Sequence record: NC_042098.1
Length of the DNA: 64,000 nucleotides
Strand: one strand, 5' to 3'
Shown: piece by piece, positions 5,025 to 53,603 of the stretch
Layout: each line of letters begins with the position of its first letter
Numbering within the stretch: the stretch's first letter is position 1
Notes under the pieces: generated by a model
Databases searched by the model: none
What the model was told of the DNA's origin: nothing
Seen by the model: only the letters and a program-made list of their open reading frames with translations
Position numbers and translations under genes: made by a program

Positions 5025-5630
5025 ATGCAACTTCATCAATACGTCGCCCTCTTACTCGGTGTGGGTTTAATCACGATCATTCTCGTTATGCTGGTCGGTT
5101 GGCTCGTGCTTGAAAACCAACGCAAATACGCCGCATTCCAACGGGTGCGTTACGAAAACATGCTGCGCTATCGCCTGACCGATTTCAGCAACCAGGTGAC
5201 GGCAGATCTCTCCGCCATGTTCCTGCGCTATTTACTCTCCCCGCGGGTTGGTAGTACCGAGCGGGTGAGTGTGGAGGCAATTGCCGGTACCATCCAAGGC
5301 ATGCTGCAAGCGATCGCTGCTCACCACAACCACGAGTTTAAAAGCTCAGAGGTTGGTGATACATTACTGGGTCTGTTGATTAAAGAGGTCTCTTATGAAA
5401 CACAGAGTGACCGGATCATCTTTACCCTGACACGTCCAGGTGCCACGAACCTCACTTATACCCTGACACATCCCGAAGCGTACGGTTCGATGCTCTGCTG
5501 TGAGCTGGAAGACTATCGCATGCGTCTGCGTGACCGCGCAACCCTGCAGATCAAGCGTGAGTTCGATCAGGTACCGCAAACGTATAAAGCCGCCTTCCCT
5601 AACTCGGAGCGGATTAACACAACCGCGTAA
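5025..5630 (+). CDS. N-terminally membrane-anchored hypothetical protein
   Basis: long hydrophobic N-terminus; gaggt RBS; followed by a hairpin terminator. Confidence 0.7.
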   Translation: MQLHQYVALLLGVGLITIILVMLVGWLVLENQRKYAAFQRVRYENMLRYRLTDFSNQVTADLSAMFLRYLLSPRVGSTERVSVEAIAGTIQGMLQAIAAHHNHEFKSSEVGDTLLGLLIKEVSYETQSDRIIFTLTRPGATNLTYTLTHPEAYGSMLCCELEDYRMRLRDRATLQIKREFDQVPQTYKAAFPNSERINTTA

Positions 5631-6027: not shown

Positions 6028-6318
6028 ATGAAATGGTACGAACGACTGGTCGAGAGTACGGTGCTGCGGTTTATGGCAACCTTCCTCTTAGCCTGCTTGT
6101 GGTCCCTGCTCCTCTTAAGCCAATGCTCGTTAGCGCTCGATCTTACCTTAAGTGTGATCTCTCTGGTGATCGTGTATAACCTGCGGGATTTCTTAAAGGA
6201 CCTGCACCACGGTGTTTCAACCCGTCATGACTTCGCAGGCTGGTTTGTGCTGAACGCTGCTGGTATGGCATTGCTCTCGGCAATCATTAACGCCCTGTTC
6301 ATCTTACATAGACTCTAG
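6028..6318 (+). CDS. small multi-pass membrane protein
   Basis: three hydrophobic segments; abuts the previous gene. Confidence 0.6.
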   Translation: MKWYERLVESTVLRFMATFLLACLWSLLLLSQCSLALDLTLSVISLVIVYNLRDFLKDLHHGVSTRHDFAGWFVLNAAGMALLSAIINALFILHRL

Positions 6319-6326
6319 GAGCTCTC

Positions 6327-6908
6327 ATGTCAAAGAAACTCGATACCCGTAAAAGTATGTTCCTGGCCTTGGTGTTACGCCACCGTCCTGAGGAGATCGG
6401 AATTACCCTGGATGAGAACGGCTGGGCTAAAGTCAGCGAAGTGATCACCGGGTTTACCTTTACCGGTCGTGGGCTCTCGTTACCTGAACTTGAGATCATC
6501 GTTGAGACGGATGAGAAGAAACGCTACCAGCTCTCTGACGACAAGTGCTATATCCGCGCTGTGCAGGGGCATTCTCACGAAAGCGTGATGAACATGCAGC
6601 TGGAAGTGGCGACACCGCCAAAGTACTTGTATCACGGCACCCAACAGATCTCCTGTGAATCGATCGAGCGACAAGGGATCTTGCGCCTTAAACGTTTATA
6701 TGTCCACCTAACGGATGACATCGAAGCGGCTTGGCGCGCAGCAACTCGTAAACGAACAGCCGGTGCAGTCTACCGAATCGACACCGAGAAGATGACGCGG
6801 ATGGGCCATGTGTTCTATCGCGCTGAGAACGGGGTCTGGCTGGCGAAGCGCATTCCTTTCTCAGTCATTGAGATGGTTGATGCACATGACGAAGAAACAA
6901 GTACCTGA
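6327..6908 (+). CDS. kptA: RNA 2'-phosphotransferase (KptA/Tpt1 family)
   Basis: LRH, LDENGW, KKRY, IRAVQGHS, LYHGT and VHL motifs. Confidence 0.92.
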   Translation: MSKKLDTRKSMFLALVLRHRPEEIGITLDENGWAKVSEVITGFTFTGRGLSLPELEIIVETDEKKRYQLSDDKCYIRAVQGHSHESVMNMQLEVATPPKYLYHGTQQISCESIERQGILRLKRLYVHLTDDIEAAWRAATRKRTAGAVYRIDTEKMTRMGHVFYRAENGVWLAKRIPFSVIEMVDAHDEETST

Positions 6909-12740: not shown

Positions 12741-13031
12741 ATGGGTAAAGTCAAAGAGATTTTGTATGGTCGCCGCGGTAGCACGGCCGGTGAGATTCTT
12801 AAGTTAGAATACATGGAGCCGTTAAACCTCACCGTCGATGAAACAGCAAAGAAACTGAAAGTTGCAAAGTCTACCATCAGCCGGATTATTAATGGCCGTT
12901 GCCGCTTGAGCAAGCCCCTTGCCACCAAACTTGCCAAAGCGTTCGCCACTACTCCGGAATACTGGATGAACTTTGCTGACAACTGCACCAACCCCTATCC
13001 AAACTTGCGGGCCAAGGGCTGGTACAGATGA
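12741..13031 (+). CDS. HigA/VapI-family antitoxin-like HTH protein
   Basis: AGEILKLEYMEPLNLT..AKKLKV..STISRIING..LATKLAKAF.TTPEYWMN. Confidence 0.85.
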   Translation: MGKVKEILYGRRGSTAGEILKLEYMEPLNLTVDETAKKLKVAKSTISRIINGRCRLSKPLATKLAKAFATTPEYWMNFADNCTNPYPNLRAKGWYR

Positions 13032-31092: not shown

Positions 31093-31749
31093 TTGTCTAT
31101 AAAGGAAACATTTCTCATGGCGATTGAAAAAGCAGCAGTACCGGCAAATGTAGTTGAGATCACTGGCAAGACCCTGGACCAGGCCCGCGGCGATATCCCG
31201 AACGCCATCATGTTACTGGACAGCAATACGGTCGATGTGCGCTACACCCCGGCATTCAATAAACTGCCTGCAGATTTGCAGCACGTCATCCTGGTTGCAC
31301 AGACCGGCAACCCAGTGATCTCATTAGAGCGCCCACTGGATGCGACCGGAAAGGTTGACGCGACCAACCCGAACATGGTGATTGCCGCAGCAGTACAAAA
31401 AGATGGCCAGCCATTAGGGATCTACCACCCTGCTCTGATGGGTCGTCTGCGTCAAATTCCAAACGGCTATCTGCTTTATACCCACTACCACACCAGTAGT
31501 AAAGCGGACTTCTCTTATCCGGCGTTTGAGAAAGCCTTGGCGGAATATTGCATGCTGGCGTTTGCGTTAGGTACGAAAGAGCAACCGGTGGTAATTAACA
31601 TGCCCGGTCTGCAATGTGCCAATAGCTTCGTCTGGGAAGAGATCAACGGTGAGCGTGTACCGGTACTGAACCCACGTCATCTTGAACGTGTGAAAGAAGT
31701 CATTGCTAACACCATGTTCGCCGGGTCAACGGTTTATCTGGTGCTGTGA
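31093..31749 (+). CDS. divergent macrodomain-like protein (likely start MAIEK)
   Basis: LLYTHY..FSY.AFEKAL..VINMPGLQC..W pattern resembles the C-half of phage macrodomains; the GGG loop is not evident. Confidence 0.4.
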   Translation: MSIKETFLMAIEKAAVPANVVEITGKTLDQARGDIPNAIMLLDSNTVDVRYTPAFNKLPADLQHVILVAQTGNPVISLERPLDATGKVDATNPNMVIAAAVQKDGQPLGIYHPALMGRLRQIPNGYLLYTHYHTSSKADFSYPAFEKALAEYCMLAFALGTKEQPVVINMPGLQCANSFVWEEINGERVPVLNPRHLERVKEVIANTMFAGSTVYLVL

Positions 31750-31940
31750 TGAAAGCGTGTCCCCTCTGTGCTTCATCGGCTAAGACCTACAAATACGCGT
31801 TAGTGTTCTGGGGTGTGCGTTGTACCAGCTGTATGCTGTTCCTCAAAGATATGAACACCTCTGAGGCAGCGGCTATTCGTCAGTGGGATACGCGCATTAC
31901 CCCCGAAGAGAAAGCAGCAAAGAAACGCAAGAAAGCTTAA
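31746..31940 (+). CDS. Lar-family restriction-alleviation-like zinc protein
   Basis: KACPLC..VRCTSC..EAAAIRQWDTR. Confidence 0.7.
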   Translation: MMKACPLCASSAKTYKYALVFWGVRCTSCMLFLKDMNTSEAAAIRQWDTRITPEEKAAKKRKKA

Positions 31941-46859: not shown

Positions 46860-48380
46860 ATGGACAAGTTACCAAGTACCGCACTGCCAAAGGTGTCAAT
46901 GGTTTTATACACCGATGGCGGTTGTCGTCAAAACATCGGAGGCTGGGGAATACATGGTTATTCCTGGTTGGTTGAAGACGATGACAAAAAGAAAAAGAAA
47001 AAGCCGGCGCGTGACGTTCCGTCAACGACTGGCTACATTGTAAAAGACGATCCGAAACTCGACAGTCGTGAAGTGGTCAGGCCCCACGAAGTGATTGAAG
47101 GGTTTGGTGGGATTTTACCTAACACCACGAATAACGTTGCGGAACTCACAGCAACTATTAATGGTATTGACTTAGCACTACAGCAGAACACAGAAAAGCT
47201 CCTCGTCATCTCCGATTCCAAATATGTCGGCGACAATGCAAAGAACCAATTGCATCGTTGGATGAAAGCCGGCTGGAAGAAAGCGGATGGCGGAGATGTT
47301 GCCAACAAAGAGCTGTGGGAAACCCTCAGCAGCAAACTTGATGAGCTGAAATACCGCGGCATCTCGTTTGACATCGAATGGCTGAAAGGGCATGCGGGTC
47401 ACCGTGGAAATCAGTTCGCTGACTACATGGCAACCCGTGGTGTCTTTAAAGGCCGTGTTGGTGACGCTACCCCGTATTATCAGATCCAGGATGCCGGTGA
47501 GTACGATAAGTACAAAACTGAACGTCCGCGCTTTGTCACGCACTCGCGCTGGTACTTCACGTTACAGACTGAAAAGTTGATGAACAAGAACGAACAGGGC
47601 TTGTACGAGTATTGCTTTGGCCACCCAAGTAAAGGGGATGCTGATCAGCAGTACTTAGGCAAAGCGTTAGCCGACACCGCCTTTAGTGTGGTGTGGTTGA
47701 AAGCACCTGAAGAGTGTTTGGATCTGGTTTATTCACGCACCAAAGAGATCGCTACCGACGTTTACGGTAACGCCTTCATTGGTCGCCTGGATAACATTTA
47801 CAACTCATTCATTCACAAAGAGATCATGGACTACGGCGGGTCGTTATTGCAACGTGCGAATAAGTACAACAATGACATCACCAACTGTACCGATGCTCAA
47901 GTGGTGCGTGAGTGTAACCCGCCAGGTATCTCTTACCGGGCACTGTCGAATTTAGGACAGCTTAGTAAGATCCTGAATGAATTTGTCAGCGACAGTTTAC
48001 CTGCGACAACCAGGGTGGTAGAGATTACTGACAAAATCTACCAGACCGTGAAAGGTAAGAAAGAAGATAAGCTGGCATTGCTCGGTTCGATTCGTCAAAC
48101 CGACAAAGCGCTCAAGTTCGATGTACCGTGTGATGTACTCGACAAAGCGATCTCCGTCGAAGTTACAGCCACGCTTGGATTGACCTTACCCAACCGTAAT
48201 ACGTTAAACGGTCTTACGGAACTCAATCCAAAGGTATACCTGTTCTTGACAAAAGAGTCCGACATTGCATTTCGCTACGGATCGATTGTGGTATGCGATG
48301 AAGGGTATTGCATCATGGCCAACGTATACGCTGACCTGCGTACGCTGTCAAAAAAGGATCTGGAGCGTTGCGGGCAGTAA
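46860..48380 (+). CDS. ribonuclease HI with a long C-terminal extension
   Basis: LYTDGG, TNNVAEL, SDSKYV, NKELW, WLKGHAGHRGNQFAD. Confidence 0.88.
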   Translation: MDKLPSTALPKVSMVLYTDGGCRQNIGGWGIHGYSWLVEDDDKKKKKKPARDVPSTTGYIVKDDPKLDSREVVRPHEVIEGFGGILPNTTNNVAELTATINGIDLALQQNTEKLLVISDSKYVGDNAKNQLHRWMKAGWKKADGGDVANKELWETLSSKLDELKYRGISFDIEWLKGHAGHRGNQFADYMATRGVFKGRVGDATPYYQIQDAGEYDKYKTERPRFVTHSRWYFTLQTEKLMNKNEQGLYEYCFGHPSKGDADQQYLGKALADTAFSVVWLKAPEECLDLVYSRTKEIATDVYGNAFIGRLDNIYNSFIHKEIMDYGGSLLQRANKYNNDITNCTDAQVVRECNPPGISYRALSNLGQLSKILNEFVSDSLPATTRVVEITDKIYQTVKGKKEDKLALLGSIRQTDKALKFDVPCDVLDKAISVEVTATLGLTLPNRNTLNGLTELNPKVYLFLTKESDIAFRYGSIVVCDEGYCIMANVYADLRTLSKKDLERCGQ

Positions 48381-49675: not shown

Positions 49676-51061
49676 ATGTTGTCATTCGGTGAATTTGTTG
49701 AGAAGTCACGCCCTATTCGACCTTTCTTGAATATCGGCGCGGGCTTTGATATCCCAACCGGTAGCTATCGTTTCGGTAAGCACGGTGAATCTATTCTTAA
49801 TGGTGGTCTGGCGCCATTCATTGCGATTGTTGGTAAAGGCAACACCTTTAAAACAGCGATCGGTTGTTTCATGATGACCCGCGTGCTGGAGCGCTACAAT
49901 AACTCTAACGGCCTGCACTACGATACCGAGTGTACGTTCAGTGCTGATCGTCTTACCAGTCTTACCAGTCGTCTGGGTCCGAATGCTGCTGCAGAGTGGC
50001 TGGCCAACGAACGTATCTACCTGACTGATGACTCCATCATTAAAGGTAACCAGTGGTTTAAGAAGTCGGTGCAGGAATACTCCGAAGCGAAGAAGAAAGC
50101 CAAAATGGGTACGCTGCCGTTTGTGGATAAAGATGGGAACCTGATTCCTTATCCATACCCGACAGTCAACTTTGGCGATTCCATGTCTGAGATGAAATTC
50201 GACGATCTGGAAAAGAACTACGCCAAGATGGAAATCGGCCAGGGTGAAATGCAAACGGAAGCCATGCGTGTGTCGAATGCCAAACGCATGTTAATCGAAA
50301 AGACCCAGGGTTACGCCAACGCCGGCGGCATGTATGTTATCATGACAGCGCACTTAGGTAAAGAGCTGAACATGGACGGCAAACCACAAGAGAAGAAAAC
50401 CACCTTTATGAAACAAGGTGACAAAATCTCTAAGGTGCCTTCACAGATCCTCTCTCTGCCAAACAACGCCTGGGAGATCTCTACCGGTACGGTGTTGATC
50501 GATAAGAACACCAAAGAGTGGATGTACCCGAAACAGGGTCGCAATGACGTGGATACCAATGGTAACCCGGACATGATCACTCTGGTGGCGAAGAACCTGC
50601 GCGGGAAGAATGGCCCGTCTGGTGTGCCGTGGGAGTTCGTGATGTCACAGTCTGAAGGCCTGCTGCCATCCCTGACTGAGTTCCATTACATTAAGAACAA
50701 CGGCCGTTATGGCCTGGGTGGCAATGACCGTAATTATTATGTTGAATTGTGCCCAGATATCAAGCTGCAGCGCACCACCGTGCGTGATCGCATCGACGAC
50801 AACCCTGAGTTACGTCGGGCATTAGAGATCACCATGGAGATGTGTCAGATGCGTTTCCTGTGGCACACCCGCGATCCAAAGTACAACATGACTCCTCAGG
50901 AACTGCGCGAAGGCCTGGAGAAGAAAGGGTACAAATGGGATCAGCTGCTCAACACCCGTGGGTTCTGGACGTTTGAAGAAGACAACCATCCATTACCATT
51001 CTTAAGCACAATGGATCTACTCCGCATGTATCATGATGAGTATCGCCCATACTGGCTGTAA
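49676..51061 (+). CDS. uvsX: UvsX/RecA-like recombinase of the phiKZ type
   Basis: GKGNTFKT Walker A, YDTE, GDSMSE, IMTAHLG. Confidence 0.85.
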   Translation: MLSFGEFVEKSRPIRPFLNIGAGFDIPTGSYRFGKHGESILNGGLAPFIAIVGKGNTFKTAIGCFMMTRVLERYNNSNGLHYDTECTFSADRLTSLTSRLGPNAAAEWLANERIYLTDDSIIKGNQWFKKSVQEYSEAKKKAKMGTLPFVDKDGNLIPYPYPTVNFGDSMSEMKFDDLEKNYAKMEIGQGEMQTEAMRVSNAKRMLIEKTQGYANAGGMYVIMTAHLGKELNMDGKPQEKKTTFMKQGDKISKVPSQILSLPNNAWEISTGTVLIDKNTKEWMYPKQGRNDVDTNGNPDMITLVAKNLRGKNGPSGVPWEFVMSQSEGLLPSLTEFHYIKNNGRYGLGGNDRNYYVELCPDIKLQRTTVRDRIDDNPELRRALEITMEMCQMRFLWHTRDPKYNMTPQELREGLEKKGYKWDQLLNTRGFWTFEEDNHPLPFLSTMDLLRMYHDEYRPYWL

Positions 51062-51141
51062 GTGTACCCACTGTGGGAGAGGGTTATCCCTCTCCTTCTT
51101 ATACCGTCAGTAGAGGGAAATAAGCTAATAGGAAGCAGTAT

Positions 51142-51561
51142 ATGCTTAACAAAGAAATACGCATTGTCGTTGCGTCGACTAAAGGTTTCAACGACGCAGA
51201 GCGTTTAAAACTGACTATTGACGGCCTCCTGGAAGATATCTACTACCTCAACGAAGGGGTGGGCGATGAGGACGAGGAGTTGATCACTGATGCCAAGATC
51301 GTTTTCATCACCAATGGCGAACACAAAACAGCGGCTGAGTTGCTGCCTGGTGTGTTGGGTGATCGGAACATCGACATCGAAGTGATCAAGGTTGATTGGT
51401 CAAAAGGTAAGAAAGCGTTTTTTGATAACTGCGCTGTATTGGGTGCGAAGTCGACCCACGGCGTCATTTTTACGGACAGCAAAGATGACGGGATGCAGAC
51501 ACTGCTGAAAGCATGTCTCGATGCCGGCTCACGCGTTCGTACTTATAGCTCTGCTATTTGA
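51142..51561 (+). CDS. divergent SLOG (YspA/DUF2493-like) protein
   Basis: IVVASTKGFND...VDWSKGKKAF..N...GVIFTD...GMQTLL parallels the SLOG half of 52051..52932. Confidence 0.6.
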   Translation: MLNKEIRIVVASTKGFNDAERLKLTIDGLLEDIYYLNEGVGDEDEELITDAKIVFITNGEHKTAAELLPGVLGDRNIDIEVIKVDWSKGKKAFFDNCAVLGAKSTHGVIFTDSKDDGMQTLLKACLDAGSRVRTYSSAI

Positions 51562-51574
51562 GAAAGGTAACCCC

Positions 51575-52021
51575 ATGATAGCCTCAGAAGCTCACGTTAG
51601 TATACTTGACGTTAATGTCACCCACGTTATATGCACAGTTAATTGCGAAGGGCATATGGGTCGTGGCATAGCCTTGTATCTGCGTAAGTGTATTCCGGGG
51701 CTATATGAGCGGTATAAACACCTGTGCAGTTTAGGGATCATCACGGTAGACAAACTCTGGATCTACCCATCACACCCCCGTCAGATTCTCTGCTTTCCAA
51801 CCAAAGATAAAACCTGGGAAGACAGCAAGCTTGAATGGATCGAAGCCAATCTCATAAAGCTTCGTGACAACTACAAAACAAAAGGCATTGTCTCTGTGGC
51901 GATGCCTCCTCTTGGATGTGGAAACGGTAACCTAAAGTGGGATGAGGTGCGGAGCCTCATTTATGCCATCTTGGGCGATTGTGACCTTGAAGTCCACATC
52001 TGTTTAGGTAAACCGAAGTGA
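51575..52021 (+). CDS. DarG-like macrodomain ADP-ribose hydrolase
   Basis: TVNCEGHMGRGIA, ILCFPTK..W..SKLEWI, SVAMPPLGCGNG.L.W; aagg RBS before ATG 51575. Confidence 0.88.
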   Translation: MIASEAHVSILDVNVTHVICTVNCEGHMGRGIALYLRKCIPGLYERYKHLCSLGIITVDKLWIYPSHPRQILCFPTKDKTWEDSKLEWIEANLIKLRDNYKTKGIVSVAMPPLGCGNGNLKWDEVRSLIYAILGDCDLEVHICLGKPK

Positions 52022-52050
52022 GGGAAACACCCTGAATAGGAGCCAGTATT

Positions 52051-52932
52051 ATGTCTGATAACGCACGCGTTTTACCCGATCCACGCGAAGATGGCAAGAC
52101 GCACATCAACGTCTATAGCCGTGGCGCTTCCTGGTTAGGACAGCAACTTTCTAATATGTCCTACTACGACTTCGCACATCCACGCTACGGCGTGTTCGCC
52201 TCGTTGGAGGGCTTCTGGTATTGGTTGTCTACGGGCAAGCAACACGAGGAGTTACGGAAGCTTGCCGGGGTCAAAGCGAAAATGACCGGCCGGGAGTTCG
52301 AGACGATCCCAAATGAAAACTTTGAAGAAGAGTTCAAAGAAGCCATGCGTCTGCGTCTGGAGCAACACCCGATCATTGCTAACGCCCTGGCTGAATCGTT
52401 ACTGCCGTTAAAGCACTACTATTGTTACGGTGGGAAAGTGATCGACTTGTATGACCGCCACAAATGGCAGATGGACTTCTACGAGGAGTGGCGTAAAGCC
52501 AATGCCCCCGAAGACACCACCTTGGTATTGTTGATCTCTGGCTCACGTAAAGAGAAAGACTACGACGCCTTTAAGCACATCGTGATGACCTACCTGCAAC
52601 CGTATATCGACAAGATAAAGGACACGTACAAAATCACCCTGCTTTCGGGGCTCGCCTGGGAAGGTCCCGATGACATGGCAATTCGTCTGTGTCGGGAAGA
52701 AGGCTTCATGTTGATTGGTCTGCCGGCTAAGTGGAAAGAGCAAGGCAAAGCCGCGGGCATGATCCGTAATGGTGCCATGGGGCGGTTGTGTAACAAGGCT
52801 CTGGTGTTCTGGGATGGCGAATCACCGGGGACAAAAGGGATGATTGATTACCTGAAGAAAAATACTATAGACCATCTTGTGTATTTACACGGTAAACATG
52901 AACCTGACTGGAAAGCCCCGGAGACATCATGA
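52051..52932 (+). CDS. NADAR-like domain fused to a C-terminal SLOG (YspA/DUF2493) domain
   Basis: N-terminal HINVYS..LSN..FASLEGFWY..AK; C-terminal ISGSR..SG.A.GPD..AKW...AAGMIRN...FWDGESPGTKGMI. Confidence 0.72.
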   Translation: MSDNARVLPDPREDGKTHINVYSRGASWLGQQLSNMSYYDFAHPRYGVFASLEGFWYWLSTGKQHEELRKLAGVKAKMTGREFETIPNENFEEEFKEAMRLRLEQHPIIANALAESLLPLKHYYCYGGKVIDLYDRHKWQMDFYEEWRKANAPEDTTLVLLISGSRKEKDYDAFKHIVMTYLQPYIDKIKDTYKITLLSGLAWEGPDDMAIRLCREEGFMLIGLPAKWKEQGKAAGMIRNGAMGRLCNKALVFWDGESPGTKGMIDYLKKNTIDHLVYLHGKHEPDWKAPETS

Positions 52933-53603
52933 CCCCAGCACGCGAACAGACCCAGCAATTTGTGATCGAGGCTATTGCTGAGATTCTCCCCGGTTCTAAG
53001 AACCGGGATATCTATATCGACTTCTTCTCGCGGTTGAGCGATGAGGCGTTTGATGCCCTGATGCAGCGGATGGATGAAGACCAGGAGATCTTCCCCTTCT
53101 ACCATCCGAACTTTACCGGCACGGTAATTGATGTTGAACGTGTGATCAAGTTAATTGAAAAGCACGGCGACACTATCATGGAGCAGCTCTGGGATATCGA
53201 CCCGGAAACCGGACTGCAGTACCTGACTCCATTGAAGTATCCGGTGCTGTTACTTCCGCTGCGTATTCAGCAGCAGAAGCTGCAGAAGAAGATGTCGATT
53301 CCAAAAGACAACAACCACATCGACGATCTGACTAACCAGCCCACCACCGAATCCAAAGGGGCTTCTTTGTCTTACCCGGAAGTGCAGATCATCTATGCCA
53401 TGGGTGGTGACAAGATTCTGGAAGAGACCATGAAGGTCCGTGGTGGTGATGAGAAGGCGTTTCGTGATTACAATAACGAAATCATTGCAAGCGGCGGTGT
53501 CACCATTGGTGCAATCAGCAGCAGCAAGACCAAGGTGAAGTCCACCAAAACCGTGCAAGTGATTCTTGAGGCCATGCACCTGAGCAACAACCTGGCCAGT
53601 TAA
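52929..53603 (+). CDS. virion RNA polymerase beta subunit, C-terminal fragment (phiKZ gp149-like)
   Basis: QKKMSIP..IDDLTNQP..SKGASLS.PE...KVRGGD resembles the RNAP beta C-terminal region; ATGA overlap with the previous gene. Confidence 0.75.
   Translation: MTPAREQTQQFVIEAIAEILPGSKNRDIYIDFFSRLSDEAFDALMQRMDEDQEIFPFYHPNFTGTVIDVERVIKLIEKHGDTIMEQLWDIDPETGLQYLTPLKYPVLLLPLRIQQQKLQKKMSIPKDNNHIDDLTNQPTTESKGASLSYPEVQIIYAMGGDKILEETMKVRGGDEKAFRDYNNEIIASGGVTIGAISSSKTKVKSTKTVQVILEAMHLSNNLAS

Follow-up and report, generated by a model that had tools for sequence, protein, structure and literature searches.

A macrodomain, NADAR-like and SLOG gene module next to uvsX in Erwinia phage Desertfox: a candidate eraser of ADP-ribose marks on phage DNA

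Layout of the gp151-gp153 locus

The window analyzed here is a stretch of 64,000 nucleotides of record NC_042098.1, from the nucleus-forming Erwinia phage vB_EamM_Desertfox (Agricanvirus); window positions equal record positions minus 62000. Three genes, gp151, gp152 and gp153, lie between uvsX and a fragment of the virion RNA polymerase (vRNAP) beta subunit gene. All three are co-oriented in the ORF list of the window and are real genes, and their tight packing between these neighbors, as given in the preliminary description, was confirmed by the ORFs and by PHROG matches. The features of the region are as follows.

49676..51061, plus strand: gp150, UvsX/RecA-like recombinase, upstream neighbor, context only (phrog_97, E 1.8e-56; annotation)
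51079..51094, plus strand: weak hairpin resembling a terminator, located between uvsX and gp151 (pattern scan)
51142..51561, plus strand: gp151, 139 aa, divergent, degenerate SLOG-fold protein (hhalign; phrog_289)
51575..52021, plus strand: gp152, 148 aa, predicted orphan DarG2-type macrodomain, AdfM homologue (Pfam, PDB, PADLOC)
52051..52932, plus strand: gp153, 293 aa, two-domain NADAR-SLOG protein (phrog_11222, E 5.5e-214)
52078..52500, plus strand: gp153 residues ~10-150, predicted NADAR domain of the phage gp30.3/AdfN type (phrog_652; hhalign)
52516..52902, plus strand: gp153 residues ~156-284, YAcAr-family SLOG domain (phrog_289; Pfam YAcAr)
52929..53603, plus strand: gp154, vRNAP beta subunit fragment, downstream neighbor, context only (phrog_3233, E 1.7e-99)

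The spacing is 80 nt between uvsX and gp151, 13 nt between gp151 and gp152, and 29 nt between gp152 and gp153, and the start of gp154 overlaps the stop of gp153 by 4 nt. The gp154 of phage RAY is vRNAP beta subunit 2. The gp152 start at 51575 is that of RefSeq and has a GAAAGG ribosome-binding site upstream. The start at 51521 that had been proposed earlier for the macrodomain gene is 54 nt too early; it creates a 41-nt overlap with gp151 and adds 18 residues that are aligned by no homologue. A scan of the region for promoters and terminators gave nothing above chance. The hairpin at 51079..51094 is listed as a mere note, because such sites in the region are not more frequent than expected from shuffled sequence.

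The macrodomain protein gp152

The gp152 protein matched Pfam Macro with an E value of 1.4e-9 (38.3 bits; cut-off, 22). Its best solved relatives in a PDB search were the DarG macrodomains 5m3i (E 1e-22) and 5m31 (E 1e-20), whereas TARG1-type macrodomains reached E 3.8e-6 and ADP-ribose-1''-phosphatases E 0.2 or worse. The PADLOC DarG model was matched with E 8.6e-41 at profile positions 7 to 142 of 329, which is the macrodomain part only; the C-terminal DarT-binding part of DarG (positions 143 to 329) is absent from gp152. The DarG-type motifs quoted in the preliminary description were found in the translation, and with DarG as the best match in both PDB and PADLOC its classification of the macrodomain was correct. 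The plasmid matches of gp152 are DarG-length macrodomain proteins, and none of them is from an Erwinia plasmid.

Residues Asn23 and Lys77 of gp152 were invariant in an alignment of seven phage homologues that included the phiKZ-type gp104; the gp104 of KTN4 shares 34% identity with gp152 (E 8e-22). Lys77 is the Lys of the FPTK motif, taken here as the Lys that is catalytic in DarG. The Asn that was tested by mutation in AdfM corresponds to Asn23 in the alignment. The AdfM of PhiKZ (gp104) is a macrodomain that acts on the thymidine-ADP-ribose made by DarT2, i.e., an anti-DarT2 eraser, and the N23A mutation lowers its activity (PMC13309987). In PhiKZ, PhiPA3 and Erwinia phage Asesino, AdfM is imported into the phage nucleus (PMC13309987). 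gp152 resembles AdfM in being a single-domain DarG2-like macrodomain, in its length and in coming from a nucleus-forming phage, and phrog_335 is common to both. By homology, gp152 is an orphan DarG2-type macrodomain related to PhiKZ AdfM; removal of thymidine-ADP-ribose has been shown for the PhiKZ protein, whereas for gp152 it is predicted from this relationship. The gene context also differs. No NADAR or SLOG occurs within 3 kb of the solitary macrodomain gene of PhiKZ, 201phi2-1, Asesino, Goslar, PhiEaH1, 2050HW and FBKp24, whereas that of Desertfox sits in a NADAR/SLOG module and is fused to NADAR/SLOG in close relatives.

The two eraser folds predicted for the module are those of the two DarG classes (DarTG1 and DarTG2). 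Unlike in DarTG, the window yielded no DarT partner, gp152 lacks the part of DarG that would bind one, and gp153 did not match the PADLOC DarG model. The earlier observation that no DarT toxin is visible in the window was borne out by PADLOC and Pfam, neither of which found DarT among the three module proteins and the 72 other window CDS of at least 99 aa.

The record annotates gp152 as 'phosphatase', and a bona fide Tpt1/KptA gene is present in the window at positions 6327-6908 (Pfam PTS_2-RNA, E 5.3e-39). Tpt1/KptA yields an ADP-ribose-derived by-product, and an RtcB homologue is encoded by RAY. The module might, on this evidence, serve RNA-repair housekeeping by removing ADP-ribose-1''-phosphate or related by-products of the phage Tpt1/KptA in tRNA repair. 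However, the KptA gene is 44 kb away and unlinked to the module, and ADP-ribose-1''-phosphatase macrodomains match gp152 very poorly compared with DarG. The RtcB of RAY is cytoplasmic, whereas its gp153 is nuclear, and PhiKZ AdfM has a demonstrated DNA-directed role. We consider a housekeeping function of this kind quite improbable.

The domains of gp153 and the divergent protein gp151

The N-terminal domain of gp153 matched phrog_652 with E 1.1e-35, the same PHROG that is matched by T4 gp30.3 (E 9e-51). Homologues were drawn from a representative sequence library and from phage records, and T4 gene 30.3 was located with a 60-nt sequence from the primer table of PMC11257639. When the N-domain family (51 sequences) was compared with T4 gp30.3, hhalign gave a probability of 90.7 to 90.9% (E 1.2e-6), against a maximum of 7.7% over 50 shuffles; an ordinary profile HMM of the family gave T4 gp30.3 just 11.5 bits. 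The top PDB match of the family profile was the NADAR 8bau (E 0.12), and a direct PDB search with gp153 returned chance-level matches only. Pfam NADAR was matched at E 0.01 or better neither by gp153 nor by any of 40 homologues. The Muenster homologue, which is 43% identical, reached E 0.1, and the annotators of its record noted an HHpred match (probability, 98.2%) to NP_415319.1, presumably E. coli YbiA. Single-sequence AlphaFold2 models, with pLDDT values of 41.0 for the whole of gp153 and 40.9 for the N-domain, were too poor to judge the fold. The SLOG half of the NADAR-SLOG fusion proposed earlier was thus retrieved directly (phrog_289), and the NADAR half by remote homology only (phrog_652 and hhalign), being missed by Pfam NADAR.

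Glu53 of gp153 was invariant in both the 51- and the 40-sequence alignments and aligns with the catalytic Glu36 of T4 gp30.3 and with the ADP-ribose-contacting Glu of 8bau. Conservation of His122 was complete or no lower than 90%; hhalign pairs this residue with a His of T4 gp30.3, and its placement on the last strand is predicted. A His on the last strand defines the phage gp30.3-type NADARs, while YbiA has Glu and the DarT1-linked NADARs have Asp there (PMC11125620, PMC11543638). The second AdfN catalytic residue, Lys43 of T4, falls on Lys63 (hhalign) or Ser60 (hmmsearch) of gp153, and 9 of 13 family members have Lys or Arg at position 63. T4 AdfN (gp30.3) is a NADAR that acts on the guanine-ADP-ribose made by DarT1 (PMC11257639, PMC11125620). 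With phrog_652, the catalytic Glu and the His that marks phage NADARs in common, the N-domain of gp153 appears to be related to T4 gp30.3/AdfN, a kinship that is remote but has support. It differs in the ambiguous counterpart of Lys43, in the remoteness of the relationship and in domain architecture, AdfN and most NADARs being single-domain proteins whereas this one is fused to SLOG. T4, unlike Desertfox, is not a nucleus-forming phage.

The identification of the N-domain as DUF4326 was rejected, because DUF4326 (rhodanese-phosphatase) is a separate, extra N-terminal domain that precedes NADAR-SLOG in 21 of 40 gp153 homologues and because the N-domain itself groups with T4 gp30.3. A direct test of the N-domain against Pfam DUF4326 was negative. 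Seventeen bacterial NADAR-like loci were found, and DUF488-N3a was matched by 4 of the 63 ORFs scanned around them. No DarT lay beside any of the 17 loci, so the NADAR-like family looks orphan or phage-borne, a pattern that does not indicate its target.

The C-terminal domain of gp153 matched phrog_289 with E about 1e-20. The Pfam YAcAr match of gp153 (E 1.3e-4, 22.1 bits) was under the cut-off of 28.2, but 29 of the 40 homologues matched this family as well, with a best E of 9.6e-13. All 12 SLOG invariants are kept in gp153 (G164, G200, A202, G205, D207, W228, A235, R239, N240, M243, G260 and T261), and the domain is, judged from its sequence, a well-preserved YAcAr-family SLOG with intact pocket residues. 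The nearest solved relatives of this SLOG family were DprA structures (4ljk, 4ljr, 5mll and 3uqz) at a marginal E of 0.012; the PDB matches of the family profile up to E 10 included no ThsA or LOG chain. The ssDNA-binding signatures of DprA are G-S/T/A-R and x-x-x-R-N/D (PMC3950713). Both are fitted by gp153, in Gly164-Ser165-Arg166 and Met237-Ile238-Arg239-Asn240, which correspond in the alignment to Arg52 and Arg143-Asn144 of H. pylori DprA (chain numbering offset by 2).

The gp153 of RAY is 100% identical to that of Desertfox and is annotated as 'DprA-like' in its record and paper. These annotations, together with the DprA structures as nearest relatives and both ssDNA-binding motifs, would fit a DprA-like recombination mediator, perhaps including gp151, that works with the adjacent UvsX and to which the NADAR-like part is accessory. 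The place directly 3' of UvsX is kept in five lineages, RAY gp153 is nuclear, DprA-like proteins can bind RecA and ssDNA, and Pfam DNA_processg_A was weakly touched by 12 of the 40 homologues (best E 8e-5). However, gp153 itself did not match DNA_processg_A, and its best Pfam match is YAcAr. The protein is fully taken up by the NADAR-like and SLOG domains and has no room for extra DprA domains, although its SLOG domain has its nearest solved relatives in the ssDNA-binding Rossmann-fold (SLOG superfamily) domains of DprA and ShosA. A NADAR-like domain makes up half of gp153, relatives fuse the same SLOG directly to a DarG-type macrodomain, the gene is outside the chimallivirus core set, and the NADAR-SLOG chain is common without any UvsX context. 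A recombination mediator is very unlikely in our judgment, and the domain assignments suggest that gp153 should not be filed as DprA.

The gp151 family (5 members) aligned with the gp153-type SLOG family over 120 columns, with an hhalign probability of 96.5% and E 7.5e-10. gp151 matched phrog_289 with E 1.6e-6 and Pfam YAcAr with just E 0.19. The Gly-Ser-Arg, Arg-Asn and Gly-Thr positions of the SLOG family are replaced in gp151 and the pocket arginines are lost, in agreement with its earlier description as a degenerate SLOG. Its profile is that of a SLOG-fold relative, not of a regular YAcAr family member, and the loss of the pocket arginines makes it a poor candidate for a ligand sensor. The proposal in the preliminary description of two SLOG domains that could detect or soak up NAD-derived signals found no support and is weakened by this loss, by DprA being the nearest solved relative, by the retention of the DprA ssDNA motifs and by the nuclear position of the RAY protein.

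Fusions in relatives and proposed role of the module

The domains of the module are recombined in related phages. Macro, NADAR and SLOG are joined in one 429-aa protein in pEa_SNUABM_48, Macro and SLOG in one protein in Proteus phage 10, and SA002 has Macro-NADAR plus NADAR-SLOG. These fusions occupy the same locus, from UvsX to vRNAP beta and after the gp151 homologue, and each of the five module-bearing lineages keeps the UvsX neighbor (including AH06, pEa_SNUABM_48, SA002 and Proteus phage 10). The fusion of all three domains in the pEa_SNUABM_48 protein ties them to one another functionally. NADAR-like and SLOG domains were joined in one chain in 62 of the best 150 database representatives. 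RAY gp153, published as "DprA", co-localizes with the DNA of the phage within the phage nucleus (PMC10299810).

The novelty that had been attributed to the module was overstated: about half of chimalliviruses are reported to carry AdfM (PMC13309987), and the available portions of two papers from 2021-22 catalogue, computationally, jumbo-phage proteins in which YAcAr-SLOG is fused to Macro, NADAR and DUF4326 (PMC7824862, PMC9503650). The module shares this domain combination, and gp153 homologues are often DUF4326-NADAR-SLOG or Macro-NADAR-SLOG. While the individual parts are known, the combination of AdfM and AdfN relatives joined to SLOG domains has not been a subject of study. Those portions of the two papers make no mention of the paired degenerate SLOG (gp151).

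The same portions predict that the fusions act on soluble ADP-ribose signals or derivatives (PMC7824862, PMC9503650). Applied to Desertfox, this would mean that the module processes soluble ADP-ribose-derived molecules, with Macro and NADAR cutting ribosyl linkages and SLOG binding or cleaving the nucleotide. The DUF4326 domain ahead of NADAR-SLOG in about half of the homologues and the DUF488-N3a ORFs near the bacterial loci are in line with such a function, and nucleotides are general ligands of SLOG pockets. However, gp152 is specifically DarG-like, and its characterized relatives AdfM and DarG act on DNA; the characterized gp30.3-type and other phage NADARs likewise act on guanine-ADP-ribose in DNA. 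RAY gp153 concentrates with nuclear DNA, whereas signals of this kind arise and are sensed in the cytoplasm, and the pocket arginines are lost in gp151. In contrast to the catalogued reading, the DarG/AdfM and AdfN affinities, the nuclear localization and the DprA-type motifs point to DNA adducts here, and action on soluble molecules seems unlikely.

We favor, with moderate confidence, the interpretation that gp151-gp153 is an accessory, non-core module that rids phage DNA of ADP-ribose adducts within the phage nucleus. gp152 would reverse the DarT2 mark by hydrolyzing ADP-ribose off thymidine in single-stranded DNA, and the NADAR domain of gp153 would hydrolyze it off guanine, on which DarT1-like enzymes place their mark. 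The earlier claim of erasers for both DNA ADP-ribosylation chemistries is supported through homology only, to the experimentally characterized phage anti-DarT factors AdfM and AdfN. SLOG may be an accessory module common to either eraser, most likely one that holds the enzyme on ssDNA or on the ADP-ribosylated nucleotide through a DprA-like pocket. The degenerate paralogue gp151 would most likely be a non-binding structural partner of the gp153 SLOG.

If this interpretation is true, the nucleus-forming phages of Agricanvirus carry erasers for both known defensive DNA ADP-ribosylation chemistries, beyond the published anti-DarT2 macrodomain, and concentrate both erasers at the phage DNA. The AdfM story would then extend to guanine-directed marks, and the "DprA" of RAY would need reannotation as a NADAR-SLOG protein. 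A concrete, DNA-centered hypothesis would become available for the widespread NADAR-SLOG, Macro-SLOG and DUF4326-NADAR-SLOG fusions.

The module also bears on the role of YAcAr-type SLOG domains. A more specific, tentative possibility is that SLOG handles the DNA within a repair-like machine of the nucleus. At replication and recombination intermediates coated by UvsX, the DprA-type pocket of the gp153 SLOG would grip ssDNA or a flipped ADP-ribosylated nucleotide, and the domain would hand the adduct to the attached Macro or NADAR, which would be a new way to target de-ADP-ribosylases to DNA, while the gp151 pseudo-SLOG would pair with it as DprA domains dimerize. Such a DNA-handling role would account for the shuffling of Macro, NADAR and SLOG among fusions at a single locus beside UvsX. 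Homologues of gp151 occur only in phages whose eraser genes bear a SLOG domain.

Gene layout of the module

The region 51000-53000 showed 100% identity to Erwinia phage vB_EamM_Desertfox (NC_042098.1, genus Agricanvirus), 98-99.8% identity to RAY, Deimos-Minion, Simmy50, Ea35-70 and other relatives, and 84% identity to Erwinia phage AH06. Window positions correspond to NC_042098.1 record positions minus 62000. The three co-oriented genes noted in the preliminary description were recovered in the ORF list at 51142-51561, 51521-52021 and 52051-52932, and are named gp151, gp152 and gp153 in RefSeq.

Genes of the module (window positions)
51142-51561, + strand: gp151, putative degenerate SLOG (ORF list and RefSeq)
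51575-52021, + strand: gp152, macrodomain (RefSeq start; ORF list start 51521)
52051-52932, + strand: gp153, predicted NADAR-SLOG protein (ORF list and RefSeq)

The start at 51521 proposed earlier for gp152 would overlap gp151 by 41 nt and add residues that no homologue aligned. The start was therefore taken as 51575, which is preceded by a GAAAGG ribosome-binding site. The module is flanked by a UvsX-like recombinase gene on the 5' side and a virion RNA polymerase (vRNAP) beta fragment on the 3' side. Successive genes from UvsX through gp153 are separated by 80, 13 and 29 nt, and the stop of gp153 overlaps the start of gp154.

Macrodomain and NADAR-like domain

gp152 scored above the Pfam Macro cut-off. 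Its best solved relatives were by far the DarG macrodomains 5m3i (E value, 1.4e-22) and 5m31 (1.1e-20), compared with 3.8e-6 for TARG1-type macrodomains and 0.2 or worse for ADPr-1''-phosphatases. The match to the PADLOC DarG model (E value, 8.6e-41) was confined to the first 142 of 329 positions, indicating that the DarT-binding half of DarG is absent. The PhiKZ macrodomain gp104, named AdfM, clears DNA of ADP-ribose added by DarT2. It enters the phage nucleus by import and is required for DarTG2 resistance; its activity is lowered by an N23A change (PMC13309987, 2026). AdfM is present in about half of the nucleus-forming chimalliviruses, and in PhiKZ, PhiPA3 and Asesino the homologue is nuclear (PMC13309987). 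gp152 shares 34% identity (E value, 8e-22) and the same PHROG with the phiKZ-type protein of phage KTN4. Asn23 and the FPTK-motif Lys were invariant in an alignment of seven phage macrodomains that included gp152. Judged from its sequence, gp152 belongs to the AdfM family and is an orphan macrodomain of the DarG type. The KTN4 homologue (L004, 4977-5465) is annotated as a putative virion-associated protein; if this annotation is right, the eraser could be packaged.

Assignment of the gp153 N-terminal domain relied on remote homology. With the Pfam NADAR model, neither gp153 nor any of 40 homologues was hit, and the homologue of Klebsiella phage Muenster (43% identity) reached an E value of only 0.1. 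The experimentally characterised AdfN, T4 gp30.3, removes DarT1-made guanine ADP-ribose (PMC11257639, PMC11125620); its gene was located by a primer sequence taken from PMC11257639. Both T4 gp30.3 (E value, 9e-51) and the gp153 N-terminal domain (1.1e-35) matched phrog_652 over the same profile span. When the 51-member family alignment was compared with T4 gp30.3 by hhalign, the probability was 90.7-90.9% (E value, 1.2e-6), against a maximum of 7.7% for 50 shuffles of T4 gp30.3. For the Muenster homologue, its annotators noted a 98.2% HHpred match to NP_415319.1, presumably E. coli YbiA. The top PDB match of the family profile, with an E value of only 0.12, was 8bau, a Phytophthora NADAR with bound ADP-ribose.

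Glu53 of gp153 is invariant in the family and was aligned to T4 Glu36 and to the Glu that contacts ADPr in 8bau. His122, which is invariant or almost invariant, was aligned to a His of T4 gp30.3. A His in the last strand is the mark of phage NADARs, the corresponding residue being Glu in YbiA and Asp in DarT1-linked NADARs (PMC11125620, PMC11543638), and His122 appears to correspond to this hallmark. The equivalent of T4 Lys43 was ambiguous between alignments. Several independent lines point to a gp30.3/AdfN-type NADAR.

SLOG domains and gene fusions

Residues ~156-284 of gp153 matched phrog_289 (E value, 7e-21). The Pfam YAcAr model fell just under its cut-off for gp153 and matched 29 of the 40 homologues (best E value, 9.6e-13). 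All SLOG-domain invariants of the two-domain family are kept in gp153, whose C-terminal domain is a preserved YAcAr SLOG. For gp151, hhalign of the protein and four homologues against the gp153-type SLOG family gave a probability of 96.5% (E value, 7.5e-10), and the Ser-Arg, Arg-Asn and Gly-Thr positions of the SLOG family are replaced, as would fit a degenerate SLOG. Homologues of gp151 were found only in 21 phage records, from the Agricanvirus group, pEa_SNUABM_37 and 48, Salmonella phage SA002 and Proteus phage 10.

The only credible PDB matches of the SLOG family profile were DprA chains (E value, 0.012). Gly164-Ser165-Arg166 and Arg239-Asn240 of gp153 were aligned to Gly50-Arg52 and Arg143-Asn144, respectively, of H. 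pylori DprA, and fall within the two motifs that form its ssDNA-binding pocket (PMC3950713). A DprA-like role in recombination together with UvsX, as the annotation of RAY gp153 as 'DprA' implies, is a less likely alternative; the NADAR half of gp153 and the occurrence of Macro-SLOG fusions argue against it.

AH06, pEa_SNUABM_48, SA002, Proteus phage 10 and Desertfox share a common locus order: RNase H-domain protein, small ORF, reverse-strand ORF, UvsX, gp151-like gene, eraser gene(s) and vRNAP beta.

Arrangement of eraser genes at the locus
Desertfox and RAY: two genes, Macro and NADAR-SLOG
AH06: as Desertfox and RAY, but with the Macro and NADAR-SLOG genes separated by an additional 115-aa ORF
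pEa_SNUABM_48: single 429-aa protein, Macro-NADAR-SLOG
SA002: Macro-NADAR, then an ORF in which NADAR-SLOG is preceded by a short macro-like remnant
Proteus phage 10: single 276-aa protein, Macro-SLOG, without NADAR

These different arrangements indicate that the SLOG domain travels with either eraser. The macrodomain gene occurs alone in seven other jumbo phages, including the PhiKZ-type KTN4 and Asesino. In SA002 (L010, 4427-6303), the module appears partly duplicated. AH06 (L002) has extra ORFs at 5029-5376 and 6261-6545, inside or next to the module, both missing in Desertfox: the 115-aa ORF had no family match, and a 94-aa ORF (phrog_625) after NADAR-SLOG is annotated as an RNA binding protein. 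Macro and SLOG are also linked, independently, in the unrelated phiEco32-like podophages: in Escherichia phage MN03 (Kuravirus; L003, 3995-5491), a sigma-factor-like gene (phrog_1740) lies between genes for a DarG-type macrodomain and a standalone YAcAr SLOG.

Among the best 150 representatives from a library of 1.8 billion proteins, 62 combined a NADAR-like with a SLOG domain in a single chain, 44 of them with a further domain (mostly DUF4326) at the N-terminus and 4 with a macrodomain; another 65 had the NADAR-like domain alone. NADAR-like homologues without SLOG were encoded at 17 bacterial or metagenome-assembled loci (L012-L028), including Pseudomonas megaplasmids and prophage-like regions. 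No DarT neighbour was found at any of the 17, where 4 of the 63 neighbouring ORFs scanned matched DUF488-N3a. This domain belongs to the same rhodanese-phosphatase superfamily as DUF4326, the domain fused to NADAR-SLOG elsewhere.

Localisation, proposed function and the rest of the window

RAY gp153 is 100% identical to gp153 of the window; it is nuclear, and its gene is listed as non-core (PMC10299810). The best-supported reading is that gp151-gp153 would form a nuclear module for removing ADP-ribose of either known chemistry from phage DNA. What is shown is which domains the proteins contain, which residues are conserved, how the domains are fused and where gp153 localises; all activities are inferred. 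The SLOG domain is proposed to be a shared accessory that would bind ssDNA or a modified nucleotide, and gp151 may be a non-binding partner.

The other features noted in the window were as follows.
6327-6908, + strand: gp82, Tpt1/KptA RNA 2'-phosphotransferase (Pfam PTS_2-RNA; E value, 5.3e-39)
12741-13031, + strand: gp94, HTH 'plasmid antitoxin' (annotation only)
31746-31940, + strand: gp124, Lar-like restriction alleviation protein (annotation only)
46861-48380, + strand: gp147, ~506 aa, RNase H domain (Pfam RNase_H; E value, 3.8e-25; phrog_3265)

gp82, 44 kb upstream of the module, is a clear Tpt1/KptA, so the phage makes its own ADP-ribose-derived by-product. RNA-repair housekeeping tied to this enzyme is a less likely alternative, against which stand gp152's DarG/AdfM specificity, the gp30.3-type character of the gp153 NADAR and the nuclear location. 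The same three features weigh against the processing of soluble ADPr-derived signals or toxins, a further less likely alternative and the one favoured by those who first catalogued these fusions (PMC7824862, PMC9503650).

Published work already covers AdfM, AdfN and the Macro/NADAR/SLOG fusion architectures. In the papers examined, no description was found of an AdfN-type NADAR next to AdfM in a nucleus-forming phage or of a degenerate SLOG gene accompanying the module; nor was the nuclear 'DprA' of RAY found described as a NADAR-SLOG protein.

The 72 other CDS of the window (99 aa or more) gave no match to DarT or another ADP-ribosyltransferase, nor to a Macro, NADAR or SLOG family, in agreement with the earlier observation that no DarT toxin is visible there. 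gp147 may correspond to 'Rhc'. An RNase H-clamp protein of this name has been described for chimalliviruses (PMC13648698, 2026 preprint). Judging from annotation, gp124 and gp94 are possible further candidates for counter-defence or regulatory genes.
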